From positions 7,440,001 through 7,504,000 of the forward strand of contig OZ038378.1 in NCBI GenBank assembly GCA_964036045.1: a stretch of DNA of 64,000 bases. The letters are read 5' to 3'. Below the pieces are notes generated by a model, which saw only the letters and a list, made by a program, of their open reading frames with translations, searched no databases and was not told the DNA's origin. A program made the position numbers and the translations under genes. Every line of letters starts with the position of its first letter. The first letter of the stretch is position 1. This stretch comes from Eutreptiella sp. 'Long Island Sound 2002'. Its lineage: Eukaryota; Protista; Euglenida. This document shows, in pieces, positions 7,433-63,360 of this stretch.

Positions 7433-7966
7433 TTTGCGTGTTTAACTTCGCCTGCAACCAATGAGGAACAAATAACTTTCCACCAATTCCCAGACTGGTA
7501 AAAGTAAATATCTATACACTTGCAGAGTACTCTCAGAGCCTCAGACATAGAGAAGGGATGCGCACAGTCAAACATGGAAAAGGCACACCCGTGCACTTGC
7601 ACATTTCTCAGACCTCAATGGAGAACGGATGCGTAACACAATATACCATTCTTAAACCCATTTCTTGGAAACATCTGCTGCTCGACCCAAATCTGGAGTG
7701 GCGCCGCAAAAAACGCGGTTGGCTCTCAAGCGGTGACGGTATGCAGACTGCGGCCCTAGCAGACTGCGAAAGACTGCGCGCGAACATGCGACACGCGCAT
7801 TTACGACAACCGAAAAAAGGACTGCAACTGATCTACTGCAACTGATCTTCTGCTAAAAGGCGACAAGGATGTTTTGAACCGTTCTGCAGCCCAAATTTAT
7901 AAAATTATTTTACTCTACTGCAACAGATTATTTTATCGCCAGATAAGGGAACGATACCTTACTGGT

Positions 7967-8890
7967 AAATCCACTCCCTCCTACTCATTTTCAACTCCCT
8001 CCTACTCATTTTCAACTCCCTCCAAGTCAAAATCCACTCCCTCCTACTCATTTTCAACTCCCCCCTGCTCATTTTCAACTCCCTCCAAGTGAAAATCCAC
8101 TCCCTCCTACTCATTTTCAACTCCCCCCTGCTCATTTTCAACTCCCTCCAAGTGAAAATCCACTCCCTCCTACTCATTTTCAACTCCCTCCTACTCAGTT
8201 TCAACTCCCTCCAAGTGAAAATCCACTCCCTCCTACTCATTTTCAACTCCCTCCTACTCATTTTCAACTCCCCCCTGCTCATTTTCAACTCCCTCCAAGT
8301 GAAAATCCACTCCCTCCTACTCATTTTCAACTCCCTCCTACTCATTTTCAACTCCCTCCAAGTGAAAATCCACTCCCTCCTACTCATTTTCAACTCCCTC
8401 CTACTCATTTTCAACTCCCCCCTGCTCATTTTCAACTCCCTCCAAGTGAAAATCCACTCCCTCCTACTCATTTTCAACTCCCTCCTACTCATTTTCAACT
8501 CCCCCCTGCTCATTTCCAACCCCCTCCAAGTGAAAATCCACTCCCTCCTACTCATTTTCAACTCCCTCCTACTCATTTTCAACTCCCCCCTGCTCATTTC
8601 CAACCCCCTCCAAGTGAAAATCCACTCCCTCCTACTCATTTTCAACTCCCTCCTACTCATTTTCAACTCCCCCCTGCTCATTTTCAACCCCCTCCAAGTG
8701 AAAATCCACTCCCTCCTACTCATTTTCAACTCCCTCCTACTCATTTTCAACTCCCTCCAAGTGAAAATCCACTCCCTCCTACTCATTTTCATCTCCCTGC
8801 TGCTCATTTTCAACTCCCCCCTGCTCATTTTCAACTCCCTCCAAGTGAAAATCCACTCCCTCCTACTCATTTTCAACTCCCTCCTACTCA
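7967..8890. repeat. Composite minisatellite of 21-nt modules inside the MULE-like element
   Basis: Modules CTCCTACTCATTTTCAACTCC, CTCCAAGTGAAAATCCACTCC and CCCCTGCTCATTTTCAACTCC in higher-order order. A degenerate inverted copy lies at about 10266-10345. Confidence 0.95.
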
Positions 8891-9192
8891 CACACAAGTG
8901 TCCCCCCACCGATCCAACCATCGACTTGCACACTATTGTTGTCACTGGAAATTCCGTCCCTCACCTGCCCTTGCACACTTGGCACGAAGAAAGCATTGTT
9001 CCATCTTTTTTTGTGCAATGTGCAAAAGAATGTGTAAAACAATGTGCAAGAGATGTGCTTCCCGATCATGAAAGTAGTATACATTGTGGAGCCGTAGCTC
9101 AAAACTGGGGGCCATGGAGGCATAACCCAACCTTACACAGGCGAACCGTGAAGGCATGGAACATAAACTCAGACTTGAAATTTGAAATGTCC

Positions 9193-10023
9193 TTAGTTCT
9201 TCGACACTTGAGCCCGCCACTCCCAAAGCTGCTTACACTGATGCAACTCAGCTGGCGAAAGTTGTTCCCCACATGCAGCCCGAGCATACAACTGAGCCAA
9301 GCGAGTATCAACCGAGTCAGCCGAGTCAACCATATTGTGAATGTGTGCATGCAATTGATCATTATACGCGGCCTGCTGCGCACTCAGGCCCCCAGGAGCC
9401 TGATTCACGGTGGTTAGCGCATCTGAAAGCTCAAGGGCAGCATTCAGCTCTTCCTTCAGCGGCGGACCGCTACCCCTACCCTGACCCCTACCTCTTCCCT
9501 TTGTAGCACCCTTTGGACCATCCCCTCGCTTAGCGGCCTTCCTGACAGTTGGCTGCACGGTTCGCTTGGCGGCCACCGGCGGGGGAACAGGTCGTGGTGC
9601 TTGTGCACCTGCCACATGGACCTGTGTGGAGGAGGCTCGCATGTCCACAAATTGGTTCAGTAGCCTCTCCTCTTCTTCGAGAAAGGCCCCTGCATCCTGT
9701 CCCTGGTCGGAAAGATGAGTTGCCACTCGATCCACATTATTTATATATTGACGCATCCGGGACTGCAGGTTCCCAAGGGAGCGGACAATCTGCTCGCGTT
9801 TCGTTCTGGCTGGCAAATCAGCCCACGAGGAGATGTCGGTCAATATAATGTCATCGTCTGTAGCATGGATTGCCACGGGTACCTGCACTGTGGGTAGGGG
9901 GAGGCGTTGGCTGCTGCATTTGGCACTGACAAGGACCTGAGTTGCAGTCTGAAATTGTTTTAAAATAAAAATTGGATTGAACAACCCAAGATGGAAGCCG
10001 ACTGAAGATGACCGATGATGCAA
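9193..10023 (-). CDS. Cargo ORF (up to 276 aa) in the MULE-like element, possibly a transposase C-terminal tail or captured gene fragment
   Basis: Uninterrupted non-repetitive ORF with helical-looking segments and a [10 protein letters not shown] basic motif. No recognisable domain; true start unknown. Confidence 0.45.
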
Positions 10024-10276: not shown

Positions 10277-10980
10277 TTTCACTTGGAGGGAGTAGAAATT
10301 GAGTAGAAGGGAGTGGATATTCACTTGGAGGGAGTTGAAATTGAGGGGGAGGGAGTCGATTTGCGCACAGCGCTAAACGCGTTCAAAACAGCGAAGTAAA
10401 GGGCAACGCTGGCCAATCACACATCTGTCAGTAATTAATAATAAGTGACAGAGTGATCAGAAGGTGAAATTCGAACTAATTAGAACAGGAACATAAAATT
10501 CATACCTTTCTGTCAGTTGCGGTGGTTTTTTCAGTTACGCGTGTCGCATGTTCGTGCGCAGTCTTTCGCAGTCTGCTAGGGCCGCAGTCTGCATACCGTC
10601 ACCGGCTCTCAAGCCCATATTGGCACATGGGACTCGCGCGCGGGTTCTGGTTTTCTAAATGTCTGGAAAATTTTAGCAGATTGAAAGGCGAAGAGCTGGG
10701 AATACAGTTTTCAGCTATTGTCTCACCCGCCGCACTAGTTCGATTTACGTCCAAATGATTCGTGGTGGTTAATTTTGGATCAACTTTGGGGTGTTCAACA
10801 TTGTTGTTTTTGGTCCTTACCTCAGCAAGTGGGGCCGAGTATCAAAACAAATTCGGAACACTATTTTGTTTTTCAATAGAGTTTGTTTCTTTGGCGGCTT
10901 ATGAGCTTGGTTAAGCTGTTGATAAAGCACTCAAGCATTGTTCTTAGCCTTTGTTCCTTGTTTGTTCGGGTTGGGGGGTG

Positions 10981-11352
10981 TGTAAGTGGCAGCAGCTCAG
11001 AGCTAGGATTTGGCAATAAGGCAGTAGGATCGGCCTGACGATTCGGCAATATTTAATAGTCAAGAAGTGATTTACGATGTACGATTTACGTTGTAGAATT
11101 ACGAATTACGATCTGCGAAGTGTGCAGTTATTTTGGTTATCCCACTGAATTACAATGATCTCTGCACAGGGTCCTTTGGAACAATGATTTAATGACCGTT
11201 CAACGCTTTTGGTGATTGTGCTGCTGCATGGGGTGAGATCCTGTTGGAGTCCATTACATCTCTGCATTTTGGGTATCTTGGCATTTCCGAAACATCTTGT
11301 ATTTTGGAGATAGTTGCAATAAAGGATATTTGAGCCTTGAAGACCCATAGCA
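10981..11352 (+). repeat. 5' LTR of element 1
   Basis: Matches 21267-21638; TG...CA termini; AATAAA near the 3' end. Confidence 0.97.
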
Positions 11353-14300
11353 TGGTAGCATCGTCTAGTTCATCCCATGCGACAATGGCTTTACAACTCG
11401 GTAGTATTCCATGTCAACAAGTAGCACGTCTACATGATCCGCCGTGTTCACCGGTTCGTGAATTTTTCGCCGGCGAGCATCCTCAACTTGAGGGCATGGA
11501 CCTTGACATTCAAGCCGACCGGCGAGTACACGTTGAACGTGAACGGTGGGTTGATTCCGCGGGGTTACCTCATGAATTTGTGTCATTCACATCCGAACCT
11601 GCGGCACAACTTGCTCAATTTCAACAATTAGTTCATGAAGTTCAATTGCAAGGTCACATTAATTCGGTTTTACACGGCGGTATTCAAAACATTTATGGGA
11701 ACTTGGAGACCATCACACGTGGATTGCATGATGCATATCAAGATGACTTGGCTACTCGTCACAATTTGAATATCTTGAGCTCTAATTTTAATGACCATGT
11801 CCGTGGTTTTGATGAAGTGTTGCGCCCATACCTTGCGGGCTTGGAACATTCAATACAATCTCGCGTTCATTTTGACGACTATAATGCTCGCATTGCTTCC
11901 GTTGAGTCACGCTTGGGTCATTTTGATTTGGTTGATCGCCAAATTTCATGGGTCCGCCGTCATATTTATGGGATGCTTGGGGATGATCCTCCACCGTCCA
12001 CGCCGTTAATTAATGACGCGAATTTTGTTCCTCTTACTCGTTCGCTTACCAACCGTCTTGATGCGTTGGAGATTGGTTCTTCGCAACTTCGTGCATCCCA
12101 ATCTCTAATGGATGAGTCCTTGGAGTTGCGGTTAAACGAGTTGCGGCTCGAGTTTATGGAACAAATTGCATCGGTGCGCACCCAAAATTCTTCCCATCTT
12201 CCCACATCCGCTTCGTGCCCCGACACTTGTTCATGTTTTGCGGTCATTGGTGCTTTGCGAGAGCAAGTTTCGGACGTAAAGGTAGAAGTCACCAAGCTCC
12301 AAGAGGCGTCGCGTCATGGGAGTGCCCATACATGTTCGTGCTCGTGTGATGCGCGCGTTCGTGAACTCTCTGATCGCCTCTCTCAGGGAGATGAGGCATT
12401 AAAGAAGTTACAATTGGGGCTTTCCTCTTTGCGGTCGACGCGCACACCTTCGGGTGTGTGTGTTTCATGTTCGGATACTTGTGCATGTTATGTGGCTTTT
12501 GCTACATGTTTTGATGAATGCACACGCAAAATAGATACTCAAACTACGGATTATGTAGCTTTTAAGGCTTCGGTGTTGCAAAAAGTAGCCGCTTTGGAGG
12601 CTTTGGAGTCTTCTCCATCGAGGAGTGGTGCATCTTTTGATGCACGTTTGATGTGTGATCGTCTCTCGGCGTTGCAAACTATTGTGGACGAAATAGGCAC
12701 ACGCTTATCCGATACTCAGGATGCGGACCATTTGCAAGAGCGAGTGGCTGCACTTGAGATTGCGATGAGCGAATGGGATGTCCACGATGGGAGCAATGCC
12801 GATTTGGAGTGTGCATCGCAGGTTTTTCCCACACTCATGGACTCTTCATCGCATGCTCACGTGTTTCATCGTGATTGTGGGTTGAACAAGGAGCGCCTTC
12901 GCTCCCATTCTGTTGATTCTAAGTTGCGGTTTGAACCGAAGGAGCGCGCTTCTTCACGGCGCTCCCGCTCTCAACCGGTCCGCTTTGGCGGTAATGTGCA
13001 AGCATTACATTCAACAGGGTGTAAGGATGATTTTGATTGGGGAGATGGGACACTGAGGGCCCCTAAGGCTAGCTTGCTTCCCATGGCGTTCTCCTCGTCT
13101 GACGGAGGGGTTCGCCTGCAAACTTTGAATGTGCAAGCCCCTTCTATCTTTGGAGGACACGGTGGGCAAGGGGATTTTGAAGATGTGCCCCCTTTGCTAC
13201 CTATGTACGAGGATGAGGAGGAGAGCCTTCATGAGATTTCTTTGGCGGGTGTGGGTATCTCTGCAGATTTTCCGGAGGTTGAGGATTTTTTTGGTGCGGT
13301 GCCGGAAGCCCGCCATGACTACGACCCTAAGCTTCACACCAAAGGACCCGATAAGGCGAAGCTTAGGCGAGTTTTCGGTAGAACGGGTAATGAACGACCC
13401 GACATGGAGGCACTGGATGACGACACTAGGCGAGAAGTCACGAAAATATTGAAGTGCCCAAAGTGGAGTGGAGATTACAATCATTGGGTTGCTTTTGAAC
13501 TGCAATGGCGCAATTTTCATAATTATTGGTATCGGCGGTGTGGCGCGGATATAATGGCGAAAATATTGCTCACTACATTGCCCGAGGCTAAAAGGGCTTT
13601 GTACACCCAACTACACATGTCACTAGGGTGGACTTACCAGAAAATTTGGCTTGATTTGGCGGGCCGTGGGCGGGGGTTGCAGTCCCGAAAAGTGCTGCGT
13701 AAGCAGTGGGAAGCCAGTACCCCCCCGAAGGAGAAATCATTGGCTGCTTATGGCCTTTGGGTTCTCCAATGGTGCTTGCTGGCCCAGAAGGCCGCACCGG
13801 TTACGGCGCTGCAGGCTAAGGATGCGTACATTGAAGCCCTCCACAGACATGGTGGTTATGAGGCTGAGCTAGATGAGATATATAAATATGAACGTGTTCA
13901 TCACGTTGAGCTCAGTCATGAGGGTGCGCATGAGCTGGTGGTGTACGAAATGGGTTGGCGTGAGGACAGAGATGCGGTCAAGCGTGCTGAAGAGGCCTCG
14001 CTCCGCGTGTTGCGTGGGCAAGGTCAGAAATTTCAGGGTGCGTGCAATTATTGTGGCATCAAAGGTCACAAGGAGGGTGAGTGCCGCAAGAAGAAAGAAG
14101 ATGTTGCGGCAGGAACCCCAAACAAGAGACGTGTCCGACCCTCTGGTGGGCAAACTGGGGGGGGGGCAGGACGCGACAGGCAAAATGGCGATACAAATCG
14201 GAAGCTGGGAGATAACGTCGATCAGCAGGGTAAAGGCGCGTCCCTGTTGACAAATGCTCAGCGTCAGGTGGAGCAGTGGCGTAAGGAAGGAGCCTGTGTT

Positions 14301-14516
14301 CGCTGTGGCTCCAAAGACCATTGGGCCAATGACTGCCCGAAGAGTAAGGGCAAGGGCAAAGGCAAGGGTGGAGATGGAAAAGGCAGGGGCCGGGGCGGTG
14401 ACCGAAACAGGAATCGTAGACATCGCCAGGTAAAAGAGGAAGAGCCTGCCCAGGGGAATGCAGATCCCAACCCGTCTCCAGATGCGACTCCTGAACCTTC
14501 AGGTGGTTCGCCTTAG
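11352..14516 (+). CDS. gag: Gag of element 1 (about 1050 aa, two CCHC zinc knuckles)
   Basis: ORF 11337..14516; first in-frame ATGs at 11352 and 11385. Knuckles CNYCGIKGHKEGEC and CVRCGSKDHWANDC, GK/GR-rich tail, ends in TAG in frame with pol. Confidence 0.9.
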   Translation: MVASSSSSHATMALQLGSIPCQQVARLHDPPCSPVREFFAGEHPQLEGMDLDIQADRRVHVERERWVDSAGLPHEFVSFTSEPAAQLAQFQQLVHEVQLQGHINSVLHGGIQNIYGNLETITRGLHDAYQDDLATRHNLNILSSNFNDHVRGFDEVLRPYLAGLEHSIQSRVHFDDYNARIASVESRLGHFDLVDRQISWVRRHIYGMLGDDPPPSTPLINDANFVPLTRSLTNRLDALEIGSSQLRASQSLMDESLELRLNELRLEFMEQIASVRTQNSSHLPTSASCPDTCSCFAVIGALREQVSDVKVEVTKLQEASRHGSAHTCSCSCDARVRELSDRLSQGDEALKKLQLGLSSLRSTRTPSGVCVSCSDTCACYVAFATCFDECTRKIDTQTTDYVAFKASVLQKVAALEALESSPSRSGASFDARLMCDRLSALQTIVDEIGTRLSDTQDADHLQERVAALEIAMSEWDVHDGSNADLECASQVFPTLMDSSSHAHVFHRDCGLNKERLRSHSVDSKLRFEPKERASSRRSRSQPVRFGGNVQALHSTGCKDDFDWGDGTLRAPKASLLPMAFSSSDGGVRLQTLNVQAPSIFGGHGGQGDFEDVPPLLPMYEDEEESLHEISLAGVGISADFPEVEDFFGAVPEARHDYDPKLHTKGPDKAKLRRVFGRTGNERPDMEALDDDTRREVTKILKCPKWSGDYNHWVAFELQWRNFHNYWYRRCGADIMAKILLTTLPEAKRALYTQLHMSLGWTYQKIWLDLAGRGRGLQSRKVLRKQWEASTPPKEKSLAAYGLWVLQWCLLAQKAAPVTALQAKDAYIEALHRHGGYEAELDEIYKYERVHHVELSHEGAHELVVYEMGWREDRDAVKRAEEASLRVLRGQGQKFQGACNYCGIKGHKEGECRKKKEDVAAGTPNKRRVRPSGGQTGGGAGRDRQNGDTNRKLGDNVDQQGKGASLLTNAQRQVEQWRKEGACVRCGSKDHWANDCPKSKGKGKGKGGDGKGRGRGGDRNRNRRHRQVKEEEPAQGNADPNPSPDATPEPSGGSP

Positions 14517-17500
14517 AGAGGTCGGAGACACAGGAAAAAGCGAACACGAGGTCCGATGAGAGTGAGTCGAAAGACGGGAGCCCCTGCTCCGCCTACCACT
14601 GTGGGTGTGTCCTCCTCCCTCCAGTCAGAACCTGTGCCTACTGCTCCGGTGGCCTTGTCTCCTGCAATGGTGCCGCCGGGGCGTTCTGAATTACCTTTTA
14701 CTGATGAATTGAGATTGCCAGTCACGGTGAGTCTCAGGGCTATTTCTAGCTCCCCTGAGCGCATGCCCTTTGAGCCTCAGCGCACTGTGCGGCGGCAGAA
14801 AGTTGAGCGGGTGCGTCGGCGTCGCGCTGAATTGCCGGAAGACGCAAAAACAGAACTTCTGGTTGCAGCCAGTGTGAAGTATCGTGACTGCCAGGCCTGT
14901 GATCGACAGGCTCCCATGTTAGTGGATTTAGGTTCCATGTGTTTTGCCATTGCTCCCCGATCTTTTTTTCCGGAGGGGACATTGGTGCCTGCCACTCGTC
15001 CGCTGCGAATTTCTGCAGTGAATGGAACGCGGTTGGAGGGTGGTACCCAGGGTGCTGTGGTTGACCTGGGGATCGCAATCGAGGGTTGCGATGGCGGTGT
15101 TGTGGAGGTGGTCTGTGAGGGTGCGTTCGTGTACATGGCCGAGGTACAGGAACAGCTAATCGTAGGCTATCCTTTCTGCAAGGCCTATGGCCTTATTGTG
15201 GACCCTGTCCGCGATTGTCTTATGGACGCTCTCTGTGTGTCTGAGTGTGGTTGTCCGGCACAGGTCAGGACATTGCTACAGGTGTCTGGCGCTGGTTCAG
15301 CACCACAGAGCTCCAGTGGGTCTGTGAGTGTTGTACACTCTGGTGGTCGTCAGCGGCGCACAAAGAATTACTGTCGCCGCCTGATTGACCTTGCTTCTGA
15401 TTCTGATAGCGAAGGGGAAACCGCTTCTGGTGTGCCACGCATGGCCGGGGCCCCAGAGTTGATTCTTTCCTTCTCTCGTTTGATGCCAGCAGTCACTGCG
15501 GTCACAGCCGCTTCGTTGGCTGCATCTCTCATTTCTGTGGTTAGCATGATCCCTACCCTATCCTCCCTGTCTTCTCCTGCCTCTCAGGATTCATCATGTG
15601 CGATGCCGTGCAATGCTGAGATACCGACTTCGTCAGAGCAACAGTGCCATAATTCTGACAGGTTGTGTACTTGTGCTAAGGACTGCTTCTGTGTTAAAGA
15701 GTGTATGGCAAGGCGTATCAGACCCACTTGGCGTATTCCCTTGGCGCCTGGACGCACCAATTCATTTGAGTTTATCAACCATGCTGACGAGGGCCATTGC
15801 TGCCCCTGTAAATTGCCATACGAGGACACTGATTCGGAGCAGGGCATCAGCGATGCAAACTCTGAGGAGGATACCCCGACACCGGCAGTGCGAACCCTTC
15901 GGGAGGCGGAGCTACCTCCTGATAGTTTTGCTGGTGACTGGGGTCGTTACAAGCAACATACTGGGGTCTGGGATTCACAAGCAAAGGATGGGGAGTGGCG
16001 CCGCTCAGAGGGGCCCCCCCAGGTACACACTTCAGCAGTCCCCGTATGTTCGTGTGTGGTGGATGAAGTCTGCCAGCGGTGTATATCTGTGGAATCTGAA
16101 TCTGAATTGACTTCCGACCCCCTGTTGGAGGCAGGGCTATGCCCCACGCCTTTATTCTCACGCCGGATTCGTCAGCAATATGATAAGACTTTTCGCAAGG
16201 TTATGGCTTTTCCTCGGCATGAGCGAAAGGCCTGGATGTCTCAACGTGTTCGTCAGTCAGCTAAGTCTGTATATAACAGGGGCAAGCAGATCCTTTTGCC
16301 CAAGGTGCGCGATGCTGTCCTGAAGTGGGCAGGTCTGCAGCATCAGCCTTTTGTTGACGCCTTCTCGTCCAGAAAATCCCGCCTATTTCATAGCTACTGG
16401 GATGCTGAAGACAACGCCTTGCAGCAAAACTGGTCCTATGATCCTAGTTCCAAACGGAATGACAAAATGCTGTGGCTGCACCCTCCCCAGCACCTGCTTT
16501 CTGAGGTCGTGCAGAAAATTCTGCTTGATGAGGCCTGCGGCATTTTGGTTGTTCCAGTGCAAAAACAATTTTCGTGGTTTTGGAGTTTGGGGGAGGCAGC
16601 ACTGGACTGGTGGGACCTGGACCCCTCCGTTCCTATTTACAAAAATGAGCAAGGGGTTGTCTATAAGCAGCCCAACTGGACCACTCGGGTTGTTTTGTTT
16701 GACGCGCAGGGTTCAGCATCCCGGGCTTCAGGGGGCAGGACTTGGGGAGACGTGGATGAGGTGAAGGGTTACTGTGATCCGGATAATAGGGAATGGGAGG
16801 ACGAGGATCAGCCTGTTCGGCTGGACAATTCGCCCTCTACACATTACCCGCTTTCTGACGATCAGTATGAAGCTGATGATGAGTGTGCGGGGCGGCGGTC
16901 TCGCTGTGTGACCTGCCCTGCGCCCTTTTCTGTGCGTGAAGCACGGCTGCGCATGTTGTCTGAGGGGTCACCACAATACAGGGCGCTGCAAGAGAGAAGT
17001 GTTCGTTCGGTGGTCGAGGGTGACAATGCCGACCCTCGATGTCAGCCCATTCGTGTCCGGTTACAAGAGGAATTTTCGAAAGTTTTTACTTTTCCTGATG
17101 ATATACGCACAGTGAATCCCAGTACACGGGGTAAGTATGGGGTGGCCTCTATTTCACTGAAATCTGGGGCTAAGCCTCAGCGGGTCACACCATATCGGGC
17201 GGTGGGGCTACGTGATGCGGCCTTTCGTGAGCTCATCACCAAATTTTCACAACGGGGTATGCTGGAGCCCTCCAGCTCAGTTTGGGCAGCCAGAGCTTTT
17301 TGTGTGCCCAAACCGGGAGGCAAGTGGCGGCTAGTCATCGACTACCGCTACTTAAATTCGCAAATTGATGACGAGCAGTTTCCACTGCCCGTCATCGATG
17401 ATATGTTTTTGAAGCAGTCCAAAAATGCCATTTGGTCCATCTTCGATTTAGAAGATGGTTTTCACCAAATGCATTTGGACGAGGCCTCCCGCCCCCTGAC

Positions 17501-20500
17501 TGCTTTTGTCACCCCATGGGGCCTGTTCCAGTGGACAGTGCTCCCCATGGGGCTGAAGACGGCCCCCCAAATGTATCAGCGTATGGTCTCTGATTGCCTT
17601 AGTTCTTTGGGCCTAGAGCCATACATTGATGATTTATTATTGGGCACCCCTGATACTGAGGATAATCCTGATTTGGACGCACTTGTTACTGATTCCTGCC
17701 TTCGGCAGCATGAGTCTGAGCTGCGCAGATTTCTGCAGCGTATGGATGACTGTGATTTGACCATTAAGCCGTCCAAGATGCTGCTTTTTGTGCAGCGGGT
17801 GCGTTTTTGTGGTCAAATTCTGTGCAGGGGTCGGAGATGTCCTGATCCTGAAAAAACTGCATCGGTTCAGCGATGGCGTTGGCAGGACATCCACACGCCG
17901 ACCCAGCTTAAGGCATTTTTAGGATTTGCACAGTGGTATGCACTTTATATAGACAAATTCGCGGACCTTGCTGCACCTTTGACGGATGCACTCCGTGGCC
18001 TGGACTTAACAAAAAAAGGCAAGAGTAAGTCGGCGCATCCGCCACTTTCTGCGAGGGCCAAGAGGGAGTTACAGGACAGACTGAGGCAGCAACATCCTGG
18101 TTTGTCTGCTGCCCAGAGAGAGCGTTTGCTGCGTCAGCATGTGTGCCAGCGGGAGAACCGCATCCATTGGAGTGACCACATGGTTCGATGCTTCGAGCAA
18201 CTGAAAAAAAGTCTCTGTCAGGATGCTGTGTTACACTTGCCGGATACCACCAGGCAGTTCTGGATCCGGTGCGATTCCTCCGAGTATGCAGTGGGGGGGG
18301 TATTGGAGCAGAAGGGCTGCTCCTGTGCTGAAGCTGATTGCAGTTGCCCGTTACGCCCAGTCGCATTTTTTTCCCGCAAACTGCAAGGCACGCCTGGCAA
18401 GGGCCAAAGGGCCTGGCACATCCGCGACAAGGAAACCTACGCAATTGTGGCCACTCTCTTCAAATTTCGTAGTTGGCTACAGTCAGCACAGGTCAATTTG
18501 CGTTATCCGGTCACAGTTTTGACCGACCACCGAAGCCTGGAAAGTTGGACCCGGGAGGATTTCGACACTGTGTCTGGTCCAATCGGGAGGCGAGGCCGGT
18601 GGCATCAATTTTTGGCCCGCTTCAAAATTGAAGTGGTATACACAAAGGGGGAAAATCAGGAAGTTCCTGATGTTTTGTCGCGGTGGGCCTACCCCGCCAT
18701 GCATTATGCGCCAGATGTGTCGCTGCATGGTTCTGAGCAGGACCAAAGGGGATGGGACAACGATGACCAGGAGGTGCGGCAGTGGGCAGATCAGCTAGCA
18801 GAGCTGCGCTCTGTGTGCGTTAATGTGCGCTCCATTTTTTCTGATTGGTGCGCCAAGCAGCCTTCCCTGCAAGGCTGCCCTGATTCGTGGCGTCATGTCA
18901 GCGATTGTGTTTGCATGTCTCCTTGTTTGCAGGATTCAATCAGTGCTGTGGAGGAAGATGATGTACAGTTTTCACTTGCTGAACGCCGATTGAGACAGGT
19001 TTACAGCACTTCCTCACCCCTTTCCCGGTCTCTTAGGAATAAAAAGTTTAGGACAGTCAGGCGTAACATCCGTCAGCAGAACTGGTCTCCTGCAGCGATG
19101 GTGGCTGCCATGCAGTGTGCCCCTGGGGCCAATGTGGCTGAGGGCGCTGATGGTGTTTCAGATCTGACGTGGGCCAGTGTCCGTGCGAACACTGTCCCGC
19201 CTGATGTTTCAGTTTTGTTTGCTGATTGGGAGCCTGAGTATCGGCAAGATCCTGAGTGGCAAGGGATTTTGGCGTCCCTGCAACAGGATGACCCGCATCT
19301 CAGGGCTCCAGGGTGCTGCATATACCGTCCCAGTCCTGGGACGTTGCGTATTCGTAGGGACGGGAAGCATGTTGTCCCTCGGAGTCTGATTACCAAGGTT
19401 ATTGCAGCATGCCATACGTATATACATGGGGGGGTGGATAAGACGTATCATATCTGCCGCCGCAAGTTCTCCTTTTCTGGGTTGACGGATCGCCAGCTCT
19501 GGTTGGAGGTTAAATCTTTCTGTGACTCCTGTGAGGTCTGTCAACAGACCAAGCCCAGAACGGGGATTCGACCGGGAGAGGTGGAGTTCTATCCTGTTCC
19601 AGATGAAATTTTCAGTAGCCTGGCAATCGATTTTGTCGATTTGCCTACGACAAAGGTCAATGACGTGGTCTTCGACTACGCGATGGTGGTGGTCTGCAGG
19701 TTTACAGGCTACGTGCTGGCCATCCCCACTACCAAATTGGGGATGGACAGCAGGAAAGCAGCCACACTGTTTTTAGAAAGGGTTGTCTTTTTTATGGGAT
19801 TACCCAAAGAGGTATTCAGTGATAATGCCTCTGTTATTAATTCTGATTTTTTGAATGACTTGTTCGATTTGAGCGGGATAGAACACCACACGAGTGTGGT
19901 TTACAAACCATCCACAAACGGCAGGGCGGAGGCCGCGGTCAAAAGTGTGGTCATGGCCCTCCGCAAATTTTTAAACCAGCGGCCACGTAGCTGGTACCAT
20001 GCACTGCCGCTGGCACTGTGGGGGTTGAATGACCTCCCTGGGCTGGTGGCCCCCTATTCCCCCCACAGATTGGTTTTTGGGAGGGATCCTGTGGGATTTG
20101 GGGAGTGTCCGCCCATTGTCCCTGGCGAGGGGGCACAAGAGGCGCAGGATTTTTTTGATCGCCTGGCCTCTGAGCGCAAGCAGGTGCATGACCATCTGGT
20201 CAAGTTGCACCACGACGCTTCAGCCAAATTGACTGCCAAATTCAGGGACATACCCTTCCGGGAGGGGGATAGGGTGTGGGTTCGTGACCTGCCGCGCAAG
20301 GACCAGCCCAATTTCAACAAGTTGAAACGAATTTGGCAAGGTCCCTACGAAATTTTAAGGTGGATGGGGGGGGGCAGATATTTGGTACAGACCAACAGTG
20401 GACCCACAGGTCAGCAGGTGTTGCAGCGTGAGAGGCTGAAGTATTACAGGTCCCCTGATCCCAAAACCAAGGTGCCTCTCAGCTACTACTCTGACCGACA

Positions 20501-20714
20501 GCTTCCACCGAGTGATGACACTTATAATGTTGAGCAGGTTTTGGACCACAGGGGTTCTGGCCCCAAGAAAAATTATCGAAAGGTGGAGCTGTGTATAGCA
20601 TGGATGGGACATCCTGATCGGACCTGGGAGGATATCAGGAAGTTTGTTGGTCGCAATAATGACAGGGTTGAGGATTACTGTCGCCGTCATGGCTTGATGA
20701 AATATTTGCAGTAA
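14517..20714 (+). CDS. pol: Pol of element 1: protease - Dam-like MTase - RT - RNase H - integrase - chromodomain
   Basis: PR VDLGS (14925); MTase-like FVDAFS (16356) and WLHPPQ (16479); RT WRLVIDYR, DLEDGFHQ, PMGL, YIDD (17622); RH CDSS..VGGVL, DHRSL; IN H-x3-H..CxxC, IDF, SDN, GRAE; chromodomain YNVEQVLDHR..W..TWE from 20523. Frame is open from 14517. Confidence 0.95.
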   Translation, partial: RGRRHRKKRTRGPMRVSRKTGAPAPPTTVGVSSSLQSEPVPTAPVALSPAMVPPGRSELPFTDELRLPVTVSLRAISSSPERMPFEPQRTVRRQKVERVRRRRAELPEDAKTELLVAASVKYRDCQACDRQAPMLVDLGSMCFAIAPRSFFPEGTLVPATRPLRISAVNGTRLEGGTQGAVVDLGIAIEGCDGGVVEVVCEGAFVYMAEVQEQLIVGYPFCKAYGLIVDPVRDCLMDALCVSECGCPAQVRTLLQVSGAGSAPQSSSGSVSVVHSGGRQRRTKNYCRRLIDLASDSDSEGETASGVPRMAGAPELILSFSRLMPAVTAVTAASLAASLISVVSMIPTLSSLSSPASQDSSCAMPCNAEIPTSSEQQCHNSDRLCTCAKDCFCVKECMARRIRPTWRIPLAPGRTNSFEFINHADEGHCCPCKLPYEDTDSEQGISDANSEEDTPTPAVRTLREAELPPDSFAGDWGRYKQHTGVWDSQAKDGEWRRSEGPPQVHTSAVPVCSCVVDEVCQRCISVESESELTSDPLLEAGLCPTPLFSRRIRQQYDKTFRKVMAFPRHERKAWMSQRVRQSAKSVYNRGKQILLPKVRDAVLKWAGLQHQPFVDAFSSRKSRLFHSYWDAEDNALQQNWSYDPSSKRNDKMLWLHPPQHLLSEVVQKILLDEACGILVVPVQKQFSWFWSLGEAALDWWDLDPSVPIYKNEQGVVYKQPNWTTRVVLFDAQGSASRASGGRTWGDVDEVKGYCDPDNREWEDEDQPVRLDNSPSTHYPLSDDQYEADDECAGRRSRCVTCPAPFSVREARLRMLSEGSPQYRALQERSVRSVVEGDNADPRCQPIRVRLQEEFSKVFTFPDDIRTVNPSTRGKYGVASISLKSGAKPQRVTPYRAVGLRDAAFRELITKFSQRGMLEPSSSVWAARAFCVPKPGGKWRLVIDYRYLNSQIDDEQFPLPVIDDMFLKQSKNAIWSIFDLEDGFHQMHLDEASRPLTAFVTPWGLFQWTVLPMGLKTAPQMYQRMVSDCLSSLGLEPYIDDLLLGTPDTEDNPDLDALVTDSCLRQHESELRRFLQRMDDCDLTIKPSKMLLFVQRVRFCGQILCRGRRCPDPEKTASVQRWRWQDIHTPTQLKAFLGFAQWYALYIDKFADLAAPLTDALRGLDLTKKGKSKSAHPPLSARAKRELQDRLRQQHPGLSAAQRERLLRQHVCQRENRIHWSDHMVRCFEQLKKSLCQDAVLHLPDTTRQFWIRCDSSEYAVGGVLEQKGCSCAEADCSCPLRPVAFFSRKLQGTPGKGQRAWHIRDKETYAIVATLFKFRSWLQSAQVNLRYPVTVLTDHRSLESWTREDFDTVSGPIGRRGRWHQFLARFKIEVVYTKGENQEVPDVLSRWAYPAMHYAPDVSLHGSEQDQRGWDNDDQEVRQWADQLAELRSVCVNVRSIFSDWCAKQPSLQGCPDSWRHVSDCVCMSPCLQDSISAVEEDDVQFSLAERRLRQVYSTSSPLSRSLRNKKFRTVRRNIRQQNWSPAAMVAAMQCAPGANVAEGADGVSDLTWASVRANTVPPDVSVLFADWEPEYRQDPEWQGILASLQQDDPHLRAPGCCIYRPSPGTLRIRRDGKHVVPRSLITKVIAACHTYIHGGVDKTYHICRRKFSFSGLTDRQLWLEVKSFCDSCEVCQQTKPRTGIRPGEVEFYPVPDEIFSSLAIDFVDLPTTKVNDVVFDYAMVVVCRFTGYVLAIPTTKLGMDSRKAATLFLERVVFFMGLPKEVFSDNASVINSDFLNDLFDLSGIEHHTSVVYKPSTNGRAEAAVKSVVMALRKFLNQRPRSWYHALPLALWGLNDLPGLVAPYSPHRLVFGRDPVGFGECPPIVPGEGAQEAQDFFDRLASERKQVHDHLVKLHHDASAKLTAKFRDIPFREGDRVWVRDLPRKDQPNFNKLKRIWQGPYEILRWMGGGRYLVQTNSGPTGQQVLQRERLKYYRSPDPKTKVPLSYYSDRQLPPSDDTYNVEQVLDHRGSGPKKNYRKVELCIAWMGHPDRTWEDIRKFVGRNNDRVEDYCRRHGLMKYLQ

Positions 20715-21266
20715 TTATCCTGTGTTCTCCTCCTGTATGTCTGTGTGTTAGGTTTGCTGTGCTGGTTCGAGTATATGTTTCGGCATACTCTATGACCCGT
20801 AACTTCTACACCAATTTGCTGAGTACAGAGGGCAGCGCGGCTCTGTCATGCCCTGTTGGGTCAGGGCTCAGTGATGGACACCGGCTGCGCCGGCACAGTG
20901 ACCATTTGCCTGTTTCCCGATCTGTTTCAATTTTTTCTTGTGTGTTTGGACGGTCATTGATTGCTGAGTAGTCATTTCTTGCTGCTTTCCTTCTCAGGTT
21001 CTCGCCAAGCCGACAGCCAATCCACAGGGACAATCGTACGAGCTCAGTCTTTTCTGGGTGTCTTCTGCCATTAGTTACTTTTAATTAATGGGCCTGTCAC
21101 AACCACATGGTTTGCATGCAGGGCAGTGCTGGGTGGTGCTCTCTTTGAGAGCACACTGACTCCTCTTTCGCTGGGCTGCCACTGCAGTCCTGGATTTTTG
21201 GCCTGTACAACCAATTTTCAGACGCTCATCACTTCCACTGATGTGCTGAGAGTCTTGGGAGGGGAG

Positions 21267-21638
21267 TGTAAGTGGCAGCAGCTCAGAGCTAGGATTTGGC
21301 AATAAGGCAGTAGGATCGGCCTGACGATTCGGCAATATTTAATAGTCAAGAAGTGATTTACGATGTACGATTTACGTTGTAGAATTACGAATTACGATCT
21401 GCGAAGTGTGCAGTTATTTTGGTTATCCCACTGAATTACAATGATCTCTGCACAGGGTCCTTTGGAACAATGATTTAATGACCGTTCAACGCTTTTGGTG
21501 ATTGTGCTGCTGCATGGGGTGAGATCCTGTTGGAGTCCATTACATCTCTGCATTTTGGGTATCTTGGCATTTCCGAAACATCTTGTATTTTGGAGATAGT
21601 TGCAATAAAGGATATTTGAGCCTTGAAGACCCATAGCA
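21267..21638 (+). repeat. 3' LTR of element 1
   Basis: Matches 10981-11352, preceded by PPT and followed by TSD GGGTG. Confidence 0.97.
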
Positions 21639-23539
21639 GGGTGCGGTTTACGACAAAAACCATTTGTTTGATGCAAGTTAGGTGTGTCAGCCTTGGCCAT
21701 TTAGGATTCCAGGCCATTTTGATGTGACAAGGGGCCAATGGCATTCTTAATAAAGAAACCAAATTTTAGATTCAATTGGTCATTTAGACCTAGTAGCATT
21801 GGGTTTCCCTTCGTTGGCAATAGTTTCAGGTTGCCATGGTGATATCATTATGTATCATCATCATGGCCACCATGCCGGTTTGGGGCCGGTTTAAGCCCAG
21901 TATTGAGGTTTCGGATCATTTTTTGTGACCTTAAGGGGCATTGAGCTTGACCTTTGAATGTTAGAAATGCTTTAAACGCAGTAGAGCCTTGACATCACAC
22001 TGTGGTAAAAGTTAGGTCCATATGAGGCACACCTTTTTACTACCACACAACAACTCCAAAACAAACACAGACATAGCCCCTAACCACTAGTAAGTAGTGT
22101 CTAGCAACGACGATACATCTTTGAGTTGGACACTTTGTTGAGCCAAAAAGAGGCTTTGAAATACAAAAAGAACCAAGCCAAAACTCAACCATAGACCGAG
22201 GATATGACTATCATCCTTCGAGGGCACCTTGGTAGTGACGCGTTACCGTGGGGGGTCTTGTCCATGGGGCACGCTAGGGCGGACACGCTAGCAGGCACGG
22301 AAATCGTTGTTCGTTCAAGTAAAGAAAATGAACACGGTGATCATACCCCGACAAATCACAGTAATCGTGCAATGAACTCCAACCTCATGAAGACGATGCA
22401 CTGCTCTTGAATAGAGGTATTCCATACCAGACTTCACGTGCTGGCCCTTATTGTCCAAAAATACCAACAGTGATAGACACAAGTGACTATCGCAATGAAT
22501 ACATGCAAACAATACATACATGCATCTTGTCATTGTGTGCGCTGCTCCGTCCTTGCCCTCAGTTGCACACATATCAATATGCAACCTACAATGGTCCTAT
22601 ATGATCGACTCTGCTCATTTTCATTACATCTTGTGCATTCTAGCATGTCTTGGTTGATGCTCGTAGCAACAACTTTTTTGAAAAAACTTTTCATGGACAT
22701 GCGTATGATGAAGTACACACTTTCGTCAACCCCGCTAATATTTTTGCGAATTGGCCACTTTTGACAGGCAAAAATTCGGCAATGGGGATAAATTAGTCGA
22801 ATTGGCCAAGAAAATTTAGATCCGAAACCTTATTTATGAATGATTTTTCACGGCAAATAATGCCGCACAAGTGCATTTTTGCATGCATATTCATTGCTAA
22901 AAGAGTAGGACTGCAAGACATCAGTTCAAAAAAGGACATGCAAATGAGATCGAAAGAAGTCACATGATAAAGAAAAGGAAACCCAACTTTTTCGTACAAA
23001 CAAAAGATTTACAGATTTGTGAGCAAAGACTTTTCATTTCCCGGCGCTCAACAATACACGCTACAGTTTGAGCGCAAAACAAAAAGATAAACAAAGTAAT
23101 CAAGATTAGCTATTGGTTCATCAAGATCCAACTTGGTAGGTTGAAATTATGAATTCTTTATTGTACCTTTGTGATGTTGCATGCGTAATTTTGCTTAATC
23201 GGTACACATGTCTTGGATTAAAATGGACGGAGTACAAATTATCAAAACAAATGTTTGCAATGTTCTTAATTTAGATGAAATATTTTTCAGCTTATTAGCT
23301 GCTTCGAGCCCCTATTTGCTATGCAATTAATACACATAGAGTAGGAAGACAACTAGTTCAATGTACAACAACTTTTCTGTTTATGGTACCAAGCACCATG
23401 CAGGGAAAGGCTGGACAAAGCAAAGATTCATGTGACGCTTCATTTTCACAACCCTTGGACATGATATGATGTATCATGTCTTAATTCTACATGTCCGTAA
23501 TGCGCTCCGTGATGAATATATGAAAATACCTACAACAAC

Positions 23540-24079
23540 AGTGAAGTGGACCCACAATCCTAAGCACCACAGGTTAAAAAGGTTTTGACAGATCGACACA
23601 TTGATGTCATTTTACTGGCATGCATGTCATTTGCTGATGCATGATGATCATGATTTGGATGGTCACTGATGCATGATGATCATGATTTGGATGGTCATTT
23701 ATACTGATTTTGTATCATTGCAACCCTGTGTCTCTAAGGCTATTGGAGTCGCTTTTACTACTATTTAACACAGTTTCGTGCTATGCGCCCCTCTTTGAGT
23801 GGGAGCCTTTGTGGGCTATTGGCGCTATTCATTCTTTTGCTCTTGGTAGGAAATACCCATGGTGGTCACATGTGCACAACACAAATAACAAGCAAAGGGC
23901 AATAGAGAAAGCAAATAAGCAAAGCGTGTAAAGTAAACGAAGTGAATGGAAGACTGCGAGTGTAAATAAGTCAGTGGTTTGTCACATACTCTGTGTTTGT
24001 ACAGCCTCAGTGTGATACAATGAATGAGTCCAAGGTGCAGTGCTTTCTAAGGGGTGCTGGTTAGAGCCTAAATCTTAGT
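23540..24079 (+). repeat. 5' LTR of element 2
   Basis: Direct repeat of 34874-35413; contains a 32-bp tandem duplication CTGATGCATGATGATCATGATTTGGATGGTCA. Confidence 0.93.
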
Positions 24080-24208
24080 GGTAGCAGAGCGAACGATTCT
24101 GAAGGTGTCAACTATACAAAGGCGCCTGATCTGTCTGTGTCTGTCTGTTCTGTCAGTTCTGTGAACAGTTCTGCCTGTTTGAATCTGAACTGTGATAAGA
24201 CGAGTGAC

Positions 24209-27247: not shown

Positions 27248-27252
27248 ACTTA

Positions 27253-28124
27253 AAGAACTCCCAACTCCTGCCGATGTTCGTCAACTGCTGCAGAAGCTCA
27301 AAAGCCTTATGACCCAGTTGAAGATTCCTATGTCCGAGACCGAGAAACTCCTTTTGCTGACCCGAAAGATTCAGAAGAAGACTTGGACCGAATGTCGGTC
27401 GACCGTGGAAAGGAAGGCGAAGACGCACACCTATCAAGACTTGGCTGACTTGCTGGAGGAACTCGCCCTCGAACAAATATCAGACCAACATGTCGAAGGT
27501 GAACGCGAAGCTCAACTCAATTTCCTGAAAGGAGGGAACGAGAACAAAAACCAGAACCAAGAACCGCCTCCCGAAGCTGGTCAAGACGAAGAAATCCAAG
27601 ACTTATACTGGTCAGAAGGACAAAAAGGCAACGGAGGCAAAGGCAAAGGAAAAGGACGTGGGAAAGGCAGCGGTCGTGGAGGCGGTCGCGGAGAGTGGGT
27701 ATGGCAACCGCCTCAATTCCATTCCATCGTGTGGTGCGAGTACTGTGGGAAAAAGAACCATGCTCATGACCAATGCTGGACGAAAGAAAGGGACGAGAGG
27801 AAAGCCCGCGCTGCAGCCAAGAAACAAGGAGAAGATCCTGGCAAAGGGAAAGGCAAAGGCGACGGAAAAGGCAAAGGCGACGGAAAGGGCAAAGGCAACG
27901 GAGAGAAAGGTGGCAAAGGGGAATCCGGCAAAGGACAACCAAGCCAAACCACACCGCCACCCAACGCGATTCCCTTGCCTGAAACCGCTGAAGGAGAAGA
28001 AGGACCAAGCAATCGAAAGAGAAGGAGGTTCCTCAAGCTTCAAGAGAACCTTACCAACATGGCCAAATCCTGTGGACTTGCGTTGACGATGGACGCAAAG
28101 CCACTCCCTCCGCAAGACAAGTAG
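27253..28124 (+). CDS. gag: Gag of element 2, 3' part with CCHC knuckle
   Basis: CEYCGKKNHAHDQC and GKGKG repeats; ends in TAG (28122-28124) in frame with pol. Confidence 0.88.
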
Positions 28125-31100
28125 GGAGGCGGCTCTTTGGGGAAGGGCTACCTGTTGCCAGTCGAAGTAACCGAAGCATCCGCGATTGAAAGTTTTATTG
28201 ATACGGGGGCTACGAGTAGTATAATGGCGGCGAAACACGTACCTGAGGGAGAAATTGAGTACGCGCCGAGTGTAGGTATTCGTATTGGCGACGGGAGAAT
28301 ATGCCTGACCGAAGGGAAGTACAGAGGGACGGTGATTCTGGGGAGAAGGAGATTACCGAAAAGTTTCTTAGTCCTCGAGACGGACGCGTTCGACGCAGTG
28401 CTCGGTGAGGACTTCTTCGAGGAGAACCCGGAGATTCGTTACCTGGGCCTTCAGTCACCGAGACACCTCCTAGTACGGACAGACGACGGAGAGTGGGAGA
28501 AGGTGCACCTCGAAGAGACCGCGGAGATTGTCGAAGGAGTAAAGGTCTTGAGGGACATCAGCTTTGACCTGGACACGGAAGTTAAGGTCGAAGGGCTGCT
28601 GCGTTTGGAGAAAGAAATGCTACTAACCCTGGAGACCTACACCTTAGCGACAGAGATGAAGGTACACGCGTACGAGGAGTTGAACATCGAAGGTGATCCC
28701 TGCGGTGACGATTTTATCGAACTCTTCGCTAACCACGTTAACACAGACAGCGAACTCTACTGTTGGAGACAAGGCAACAGCGCCTGGTGGTACGATTGGC
28801 GAGACCTGGGGAGATGGAAGTACCTGTACGCCAACCCACCGTTCTCCCAAATGGAGAAAGTCCTGACGAAAGTCGTGTTGGAAGGTGCACGAGTAATCCT
28901 TGTCGTACCTGAAGAAGGGAAATGGATGAAGAAAGCGTGGAGAGAATTACTGACCAAGCTGACAATAACCCAAGTACGACTACCCGATGTTCCTATGTAC
29001 AAAGTTGACTACGGGGTGGAGCTACTGCCCGCTCCCAAGTGGCGAACGAATTTATGTCTTGTTGACGGATCGCTCAACCCGGTGGCGCGAGAGGACTTGA
29101 ACCCCGAAGTTGTCGAGAAGATCACAAAGAACAACCGAGGATGGGGAAGAAAGCACATGTTACAACACTTTCTTGACCTGAAGGAATCGCAACAAGACCG
29201 AAAACGCGAAGACATGAAGGTGACCATCAAAGAACTACCCAAAGGAAACCGAGAATTCCCGGCGGAAGAGAAAGGTGAACTCTCGGAAGAAGCGCACGAC
29301 AGCGATGGGCTGTCGGAAGCTCCTAGTATAAGCACCATCGCACCTGTGACTGAAGGGAGCTACCCAACTTCGATGGAGTACGAGGACATGTTCAACGACG
29401 TTCTTTTGGCTTGTGAAAACGAAGAATTGTTGCTCCGACGAACCATCGAGGAGAACCTACAGCCGAAGAGCGAATGGCATGGATTTCAGTATGGGTTCGA
29501 AACAAAGAAGCGAAAGACGAATCTAGCTAAGCCGACAGAGTCGTGGCCCATGTCAACGCAGGATCGAGAAGAAGTGAAGGCCCTACTCTGGACGCGCATC
29601 GATCAGATTCAGAAAGAGGAGTTGAAAGACCTCTGGAAGTCTAAGGTTTACTTGCCCGATCACGATGATGGAGCGACAGACGAGTACTCGGAGGTCTTGA
29701 ACTACACCGATCTGTGTGACCTGTTAGAAGAGTACAGGGAGACTACGGACTACTATGCCGATGAGGAACTCAACACAGGTGGCGCGAAGAGATGCAAGAA
29801 GAACAAACGCCAGAGGAAGAAAGAACGTACCAAAAGATGTGAACGTGCTTTTGGGTTGACTGAAGTCGGGATACCCGAAGAAGTGAAACCGGACGGTCTC
29901 CACAACCAAAAAAAGGATGAGTTCGGGCGAAGCAACCTGCAAGCGAGCGAGGACTTCATGAGCAAAGTTAAAGAACACGACGAGCGTGTGTGGAACATCT
30001 TACACAAGTACCAAGAGGTGTTCGGACCATTGCCATCACCTGGAACCTGTAAAAAGCTGGTACCGCTTGACTTGGAGCTGAAAGAAGAGCACGCCAAAGA
30101 TCGAATAAGGTCGAAGCCTTATCCGTGTTCCAAAGCTGACATGGACGAGATCATGCGGCAAGTTTTGGAGTGCGTGGAGGCAGGGCTGATCGAGGAATAC
30201 AAGGAGGGAGACTACCCCAAGCATTGTTCCCCTTGTTTCCTAGTGGCGAAGCCAGGGTCTACGGCGAAGAGGTTAGTCGTGGACTACCAAAAGCTCAACC
30301 GCAAGATCAAGCAGCACAGTGGGTCCCTGCCGTTTATGGAGAACACGGTGGAAAACGCAGCGGACTGCAAGTTCAAGACGAAGATGGACAAGAGGTCAGG
30401 CTTTTGGCAAGTGGACCTGACGGAGCGCGCAAAGGACATGATGGCTTTCATCACTCCACAAGGCCGTATTTTCAAGTGGCGAGTGATGCCTTTTGGCATT
30501 AGCAACGCCCCAGCCTTGTTCCAGGAGATGATGTCTCAAGTCCTGTGCCTCGTCAAGAAGAGACCAGCCGTTCAAGAGCTACTCACAAGAGGTGCCGTGT
30601 TGGAGGCGCACATTGACGACGTGCTGCTAGGGACCAACTCGGTCGAGGACCATTTGGTACTCTTGAGTGAGTTTTTCGAAGTCTGTCAAGAGCAACACTT
30701 GAGGATAAAGCTGGAGACGTGCGAGTTCCTCCGGAGTGAAATGGAGTATCTGGGGTTTACAATTGGACCGGGATGGTGGAAGCCAACGGATGCAAAGTTG
30801 CGACCATTGCTCGACTTCGACCTGTCTGAAGTCAATGGAAAGGCCGAAGGTGTCAAGAAAATACGCCAGTTCGTGGGGTCGTGTAACTTTTACCGAAGAC
30901 ACCTGAAGAACTTCACCTTCAGCAGTGCACCCTTGACCGACCTCATCAAGAACGAGACCAAGTGGCAATGGACAGAGAAAGAGCAAGCAGCACTAGAGGA
31001 AATGAAAGGAAAGCTTAAGAACTGCCTGATCTTAGGCGTACCTCGGCCAGTCGGTGAGATGTTGCTGGTTACGGACGCGTCGGATGTTGGAGGCGGAGGT

Positions 31101-63301: not shown

Positions 63302-63360
63302 AGCATCTTGCTCTGGAGTGGCTAATTTGAAAGCTCGCTCACCCTACCAGCTAGTACGAA

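Follow-up and report, generated by a model that had tools for sequence, protein, structure and literature searches.

A selected clade of retrotransposon Dam-like domains with histidine in place of the catalytic asparagine in Eutreptiella

What does a methyltransferase domain carried by a retrotransposon do once its catalytic motif has changed? Long terminal repeat (LTR) retrotransposons with a phage-Dam-derived domain (DAM-LTR) are described in several eukaryotes including Euglena gracilis (Fernandez-Moreno et al., bioRxiv 10.64898/2026.05.21.726589, May 2026). The function of this domain, in DIRS elements as in DAM-LTR retrotransposons, was never shown. The window, that is the whole stretch of 64,000 nucleotides analysed here (positions 7,440,001 to 7,504,000 of contig OZ038378.1, assembly GCA_964036045.1, Eutreptiella sp. 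'Long Island Sound 2002'), contains a Ty3/gypsy-type LTR retrotransposon of 10.7 kb at about 10975-21642, referred to below as element 1. Its pol open reading frame (ORF; 14556..20714, plus strand, 2052 codons, no internal stop) holds in frame a Dam-like domain (DAM, or MT) of about 150 residues, at 16270..16715 on the plus strand (pol residues 573-720). Amino-methyltransferases carry a catalytic (D/N)PP(Y/F/W) motif in the loop after the fourth core strand. In the element 1 domain no (D/N/S)PP(Y/F/W) is found after this strand, and H642-P643-P644-Q645 (16479..16490, plus strand) stands there instead, directly after strand 77-80 of the structural model and aligned to the N-P-P-F of a second element of the window, element 2. 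An earlier reading of this DNA, the initial annotation, had placed the segment and its HPPQ (pol residues 642-645) at these positions, and the strings it quoted are present; FVDAFSS starts at pol residue 599 (nt 16350-16370) and VVLFDA at residue 712.

The element 1 segment is a true homologue of the Dam-like domain of element 2 (28689..29126, plus strand), at the same place in pol. Within its own genome (2.28 Gb of host assembly searched), the element 1 domain matches some families at about 54% identity, with E values down to 1e-61, and others at about 38-42% (E about 1e-30). One family matched at this last level bears asparagine, with the motif NAPF, and passes the Pfam Dam (PF05869) cut-off of 28.1 bits with 42-45 bits; because of this intermediate, the likeness between the two domains of the window is not due to chance. 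When these were compared by BLASTP, 29% identity was found over 126 residues (E 3e-8), with HPPQ opposite NPPF (element 2 pol residues 233-236, nt 28833-28844), the replacement that had been proposed at the outset. Both match Pfam Dam below the cut-off and in the same profile register, with 16.9 bits for element 1 and 15.6 bits for element 2, the element 1 match spanning only positions 31-103 of the 169 of the profile. In each pol the domain lies between the protease (PR) and the reverse transcriptase (RT) match RVT_1, which for element 2 are the Pfam matches gag-asp_proteas (residues 16-95) and RVT_1 (704-876), and the common PR-DAM-RT order claimed for the two elements is thereby upheld.

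A model of the element 1 domain made with AlphaFold2 (AF2) from an 84-sequence alignment was confident (pLDDT 88.8, predicted TM-score 0.85), and predicts a class I methyltransferase fold like that of phage Dam. It matched BFVD models of phage DNA N6-adenine methyltransferases (Dam) with an E value of 7.6e-9 and TM-scores of 0.6-0.69. The best solved match was PCIF1 (Z 9.7, root-mean-square deviation 2.8 Å over 127 residues), and further solved matches were KsgA/Dim1/Erm (Z 8.0-8.7), T4 Dam (Z 7.9) and EcoDam (Z 7.5); the best solved matches are amino-methyltransferases for adenine N6. In the element 2 model (pLDDT 92.8), strands and helices follow one another as in element 1, PCIF1 is again the top solved match (Z 8.6) and the families next in rank are the same, so that the two domains agree in structure, as the initial annotation had supposed. 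A sequence search of PDB chains gave only noise with the single domain (E >0.5) and no match with the profile, and the link to solved structures is therefore made by fold comparison only. A word-index protein search with domain residues 575-735 found no match at E 0.001 among proteins of 1130-3590 residues, a result of little weight since gene calling seldom picks up the long ORFs of transposable elements.

HPPQ is fixed in the element 1 family, and the histidine substitution is older than the family. Thirty-four of the 37 genome copies, 86-100% identical in the domain, read HPPQ, and the three others carry single-copy changes (HPPG, HLPQ and HPHQ); the survey suggested by the initial annotation thus shows no private mutation. 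Families about 54% identical to element 1 read L-H-P-P-H (10 copies) or I/V-H-C-P-H (16 copies, plus one HCPQ), and deeper branches found in the whole-library search read HPPD, HPPN, HAPK and HPPH. The traced members of these deeper branches all came from one European Nucleotide Archive (ENA) assembly, ERZ25074135, which must stem from the same or a very close species, because it also contains a decayed copy of element 1, 94-96% identical. In a FastTree phylogeny of 128 domains the histidine-bearing ones form a clade of 22 tips, the His clade, with a Shimodaira-Hasegawa (SH)-like support of 0.993, and its sister is an asparagine-bearing NAPF/NGPF group (support 0.986). The pols of the element 1, HPPH, HCPH and NAPF families are co-linear, with RT identities of 62-73%. 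We concluded that a single replacement of asparagine by histidine took place, at the root of a clade that comprises several families of the host genome. Since the His clade is sister to NAPF/NGPF and the pols are co-linear, the replacement arose in an LTR lineage that already had the domain upstream of RT. Such a position was found in 6 of 6 long Ty3/gypsy-type relatives scanned; a seventh relative, copia-like, has the domain between integrase (IN) and RT. An insertion of the domain ancestral to a clade, as first proposed, can therefore be upheld for the clade made up of element 1 and the HPPH, HCPH and NAPF families. No such common origin can be claimed for elements 1 and 2, whose pols are only 23-27% identical in RT and IN (27% for the RTs) and whose domains stand in different parts of the domain tree.

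More widely, a profile search of 1.84 billion cluster representatives returned 1825 relatives at E ≤0.001, of which 327 at ≤1e-10. N-P-P-F is aligned to the HPPQ position in 67 of the 150 best-scoring cluster representatives, and the canonical N-P-P-[FWY] is present in only 75 of the 140 best library representatives covering the motif; single representatives may be decayed copies, and only motif patterns at the level of clades are to be trusted. A second clade (P0022, P0030, P0032, P0034, P0041, and L094, a contig of Joint Genome Institute sample 3300016674) swaps the catalytic asparagine for cysteine and keeps the aromatic residue (C-P-P-F); in one of its members, which still scores above the Pfam Dam cut-off, an RT ORF follows directly downstream. 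Another group of library representatives has N-P-P-[ILVHQ] as its motif. On an 11.6 kb scaffold of ENA metagenome ERZ28614740 (L093), a complete-looking chromovirus with a gag of 1178 residues and a pol of 1677 residues (RT, RNase H, IN and Chromo) has a Dam-like domain reading H-P-M-F, an independent Asn-to-His change outside the Euglena clade. The Dam-like domain is also present in Ty1/copia-like elements: in P0142, a sequence of 1114 residues from the library search, rve is followed by the domain and then by RVT_2, a copia-type order. This layout is probably that of the lineage with DAM between IN and RT in the preprint cited above. In ERZ25074135 a dUTPase (PF00692) ORF was found just upstream of the Dam-like domain, with RT after it, at three loci (L089:7128-9131, L091:3762-6690 and L095:4044-5564). 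These elements are deep branches of the His clade (HPPD, HPPN, and the HPPH of P0094), which suggests a dUTPase-DAM-RT layout in its deep families.

We then compared, column by column, 78 Asn-Pro-Pro domains with 22 His-clade domains. The catalytic Asn, present in 100% of the Asn-type domains, is His in 20 of 22 (H642 in element 1), and the Phe of NPPF (76% in the Asn-type) is H, Q, D, N or K (Q645). At least three further positions conserved in Asn-type domains are lost along with these two: the Tyr of the N-terminal helix (96%; Q578 in element 1), the Asn that closes D-x-F-A-S-x-x-N, a stretch following the first strand (75%; S608), and the Trp two residues past the conserved fifth-strand Pro (83%; Q669). 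The Phe of D-A-F (76%) is Leu in the His clade (L622). Fold-defining residues are retained, and the clade keeps the first-strand D-x-F, the Trp of D-W, the Leu-Trp before the loop, the second Pro of the motif, the Lys of the following helix, the fifth-strand Pro and the C-terminal T-R-V-V-L-F-D-A. The first core strand of element 1 (FVDAF, with D601; 16350..16364, plus strand; model strand 38-41), in which D and F are nearly invariant across 84 sequences, would be the cofactor-side motif I. In the model the lost residues seem to lie mostly at or just after the C-terminal ends of strands, on what would be the cofactor- and substrate-binding side of the fold. Four positions are newly conserved in the His clade (W676, K670, E680 and D684), and make up no recognisable metal site. 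A zinc site, which H-C-P-H could suggest, was rejected, as the clade has no further column of conserved Cys or His.

The ratio (omega) of non-synonymous (dN) to synonymous (dS) substitution rates was measured for L063, an HCPH copy whose pol is open over 2024 codons, against each of the HPPH copies L083 and L084, all comparisons being made on natural copies only. For the Dam-like domain, dN was 0.10, dS about 1.37 and omega 0.07-0.08, an approximate value since dS is near saturation (1.3-1.5), with dN far below dS in all pairs. For the rest of pol, omega was 0.03 for RT, 0.03 for RNase H, 0.05 for IN, 0.16 for PR and 0.11-0.16 for the linkers. Amino-acid identity between element 1 and L063 was 58% in the domain, compared to 54% in PR, 64% in IN, 73% in RT, and 28% and 37% in the flanking linkers. 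Comparisons with decayed copies gave higher ratios, 0.3-1.1, as expected of neutral decay after insertion. The dN/dS analysis advised by the initial annotation hence shows purifying selection on the Dam-like domain of the His clade, roughly comparable in strength to that acting on protease and integrase.

What may be selected in such a domain was then weighed. If the segment were a decaying relic carried in pol, or HPPQ a private lesion of one copy, the weak Pfam scores of the His clade (11.8-22.8 bits, with no match at all for some members) and the loss of the canonical motif would be accounted for. However, the omega of 0.07-0.08, a conservation twice that of the flanking linkers, a confident AF2 model and the several families of the clade with long open pol frames make this highly improbable; a neutral relic and a private mutation were both rejected, given HPPQ in 34 of 37 copies and purifying selection. 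With a confidence slightly above even, we favour a pseudo-methyltransferase whose selected role is to bind nucleic acid, cofactor or a partner, on the basis of motif logic and of the conservation patterns. The features of such a protein are seen: the catalytic polar residue and the aromatic one are lost, the fold is retained, and selection is purifying. Background on the motif comes from its relatives: the first residue (Asp/Asn) is catalytically critical in amino-methyltransferases and, in METTL3, essential for both S-adenosylmethionine binding and activity; stacking on the methylated adenine has been proposed for the aromatic residue (METTL3; PMC8287941). METTL16 and METTL5 lose their activity when the residue at either end of the motif, first or last, is mutated, and mutations within the motif inactivate PCIF1 (PMC8287941). 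METTL14, with the motif EPPL, is inactive alone and needed as a scaffold for METTL3 (PMC8287941). With H-P-P-Q replacing (D/N)PP(Y/F/W) in the loop after the fourth core strand, the His-clade domain would have given up canonical adenine-N6 methyl transfer, and such methylation is not expected of the clade because the catalytic Asn and the aromatic residue are both replaced. The domain would then act inside the polyprotein as a binding module, for nucleic acid, for cofactor, or for a methyltransferase partner, either of the host or of the Asn type, which it might support as METTL14 supports METTL3. Several points weigh against this. The inactivity of the domain is deduced from motif logic, the placing of the lost residues around one pocket from their positions at the C-terminal ends of strands, the clade support is of the FastTree SH-like kind only, and omega is approximate at such dS. 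Twenty of 22 tips conserve the His, and the scaffold of the loop, made up of L, W, H and the second P, is conserved to the same degree as in the Asn-type, which fits a pocket still in use, possibly for another catalytic chemistry. The first-strand Asp, kept as D or E in 20 of 22 tips, is a likely cofactor ligand, and cofactor binding may persist.

As the main alternative, the domain may still be an enzyme, with a changed chemistry or substrate. In a pocket remodelled to be polar, the histidine would accept a hydrogen bond or act as general base. A stacked, flipped adenine would then no longer be the target, which may instead be a different atom of a base, a ribose, a protein or an RNA:DNA hybrid intermediate. 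The conservation of His across a deep clade (20 of 22 tips) with its L-W-x-H-x-P scaffold, the retained first-strand acidic residue, the new conserved columns W676, K670, E680 and D684, and the strong purifying selection all speak for it, as does the fourth motif position, always polar (H, Q, D, N or K), which points to an altered rather than a drifting pocket. Yet this fourth residue differs between families, which is unusual for a catalytic residue, and two further residues, the motif I-region Asn and the Trp that follows the fifth strand, have also been lost. We know of no characterised methyltransferase with H-x-P-[HQDN] at the motif position, a review (PMC8287941) included, and this also counts against a changed enzyme. 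Moreover, even canonical retroelement DAMs showed no activity in E. coli (10.64898/2026.05.21.726589). Taken together, we consider a changed enzyme rather doubtful. It is quite improbable that the domain is still a canonical N6-adenine methyltransferase with His standing in for Asn: fold and Pro-Pro turn are preserved, and the amino group of the target could in principle donate a hydrogen bond to a His nitrogen, but the aromatic residue that would stack on adenine has given way to Q, H, D, N or K, and three more conserved residues have disappeared with it. The initial annotation had spoken of a dead or altered methyltransferase, possibly with N4-cytosine or RNA as substrate. A dead or altered methyltransferase is the most reasonable reading by motif logic and conservation patterns; nothing in the analysis points specifically to N4-cytosine or RNA. 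The usual N4-cytosine motif is SPP[YF]. We put forward, tentatively and as an unlikely generalisation, that a retrotransposon Dam-derived domain can have a selected role with no need for canonical adenine methylation, either as a recruiter or partner, which would bind cDNA or chromatin and bring in the host AMT1 complex or an Asn-type DAM in the manner of METTL14, or through a new catalysis founded on His.

How do these domains relate to known systems? Element 1 resembles the published DAM-LTR retrotransposons in being a Ty3/gypsy-type LTR element with a putative chromodomain-type tail and, by profile search and tree, a domain of the retroelement DAM family in pol, in the same type of host. 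It differs from them in lacking the Asn-Pro-Pro triplet, replaced across the His clade by His-Pro-Pro, His-Cys-Pro or His-Ala-Pro. In the preprint, Asn-Pro-Pro is reported in almost all DAMs, whose catalytic potential is argued to be retained, and inactive or histidine variants go unmentioned (10.64898/2026.05.21.726589). Its authors report more N6-methyladenine (6mA) on DAM-LTR insertions, and no detectable gain of 6mA when Asn-type retroelement DAMs were expressed in E. coli (10.64898/2026.05.21.726589). They derive LTR-borne DAMs from DIRS-like elements, argue for repeated domain transfers in Euglena, and find that eukaryotic DAMs can be aligned to no more than a part of the prokaryotic ones, which runs from the latter half of the target-recognition region up to the second catalytic region (10.64898/2026.05.21.726589). 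Their screen was an hmmsearch with Pfam Dam at E 1e-5 (10.64898/2026.05.21.726589), and because of this, the His clade (11.8-22.8 bits or nothing) and element 2 (15.6 bits) were very likely missed; the His clade falls below the threshold and is probably absent from that data set. The kind of element is thus already published, and the selected histidine clade is a new variant of it. The MT domain of DIRS1-like elements, whose function has been called unknown since its discovery (PMC3266345), belongs to the same family as the element 1 domain (10.64898/2026.05.21.726589), but occupies the C-terminal end of pol, behind RT and RNase H, in elements with a tyrosine recombinase, whereas in element 1 it lies between protease and RT, in an element with an integrase. 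Phage Dam (PF05869) shares the fold over the whole element 1 domain, by the BFVD comparison, and a weak sequence match in the right register, but element 1 is under the score cut-off and does not have the catalytic motif. METTL14 likewise combines a methyltransferase fold, a motif in which the acid or amide and the aromatic residue are both replaced (EPPL), conservation, and a scaffold function (PMC8287941), but it is a cellular protein of the MT-A70 family and an obligate heterodimer, and resembles the element 1 domain in working principle alone. PCIF1 (CAPAM), the best solved match for both elements, has the motif NPPF, but with 14-17% sequence identity, a much larger size, a helical domain and an RNA cap substrate, the likeness is at the level of the fold only.

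The His clade matters because it offers a direct comparative test of catalysis: its recently active families are without catalytic Asn and stacking aromatic residue, and their domain is still under strong selection. Should His-type insertions carry as much 6mA as Asn-type ones, in public Euglena nanopore data, then the domain works by recruitment and not by catalysis; should they carry less, catalysis by the Asn-type domain would be supported. If the role of the domain needs no canonical methylation, the 6mA enrichment of DAM-LTR elements requires an explanation without element-encoded catalysis in at least one lineage. In addition, screens based on a Pfam threshold undercount such domains, as both the His clade and the very abundant family of element 2 are under the cut-off.

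Element 1 itself is young and intact, and its family was recently active, since its LTRs are 99.5% identical, five genome copies share a Dam-like domain 100% identical to its own, and seven have the full, 2065-codon open pol frame. Blastn of the two ends placed the 5′ LTR at 11 kb (10975..11356, plus strand; 382 bp as aligned, with approximate termini) and the 3′ LTR at 21261..21642 (plus strand), with two mismatches, at 10979 and 11353. The gag ORF (11352..14516, plus strand, first Met at 11352) encodes two CCHC zinc knuckles, at gag residues 903-916 and 987-1000 (Pfam zf-CCHC and regular expression), and ends in a single UAG, in the same frame as pol. The protease region (14886..15230, plus strand; pol residues about 111-225) was delimited by alignment with related pols; Pfam found no protease in the element 1 copy, whereas the element 2 counterpart matches gag-asp_proteas. 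At the protease active-site position, element 1 (14919-14936 in the window) and the HCPH and HPPH families read D-L-G-S instead of the usual D-[ST]-G, and an NAPF copy with a 1774-codon open pol reads H-S-G-S (loci compared: L063, L083 and L065). A Cys-rich linker of about 350 residues (15231..16269, plus strand), with several CxxC-like clusters, joins the protease to the Dam-like domain; the Pfam scan gave no family match in it, and it is poorly conserved between families (amino-acid identity to L063 of 0.28, versus 0.58 for the domain). Downstream of the domain come, all on the plus strand, RT (17304..17819, pol residues 917-1088; RVT_1, E 5.5e-24), RNase H (18168..18623, residues 1205-1356; RT_RNaseH_2 and RT_RNaseH), and the zinc finger and core of the integrase (19374..19910, residues 1607-1785; Integrase_H2C2, E 3.2e-10), the core match (rve, E 1.1e-4) being below the Pfam cut-off. 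A chromodomain-like C-terminal tail (20508..20711, plus strand), without direct Pfam Chromo match, aligns with the element 2 tail, which holds one. The PR-RT-RNase H-IN order is that of a Ty3/gypsy chromovirus, and with LTRs on both sides, RT, RNase H and integrase, element 1 has the DAM-LTR layout.

Element 2 is bounded by LTRs of 540 bp, 100% identical (23540-24079 and 34874-35413), which differ in length from those of element 1, as had been noted initially, and its pol ORF lies at 28137-33308 on the plus strand. Its family (23540-35413 in the window) has many copies 96-99% identical with 1727-codon open frames, and is far commoner, with 33,329 first-look candidates versus 15,286 for the element 1 search, in which all His-clade and NAPF families are included.

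Elsewhere in the window, a long array of 21 bp tandem repeats (at least 42 registers) occupies 7844-9000, where the long ORFs that overlap each other on opposite strands (7959-8945, minus; 8089-9417, plus) are probably repeat artefacts. An array with a 10 bp period lies at 46739-47216, and GC skew is strong, +0.27, in 46001-48000. In the host genome, 5,458 copies of the 24-base Euglena gracilis spliced-leader sequence were counted, versus 0 for the reversed control, which supports, without formally establishing, a genome of the Euglena gracilis type. Finally, at least eight units of 85 bp, 98-99% identical, form a tandem array at 63273-63952, and a 114 bp piece of it recurs at 61462-61575.

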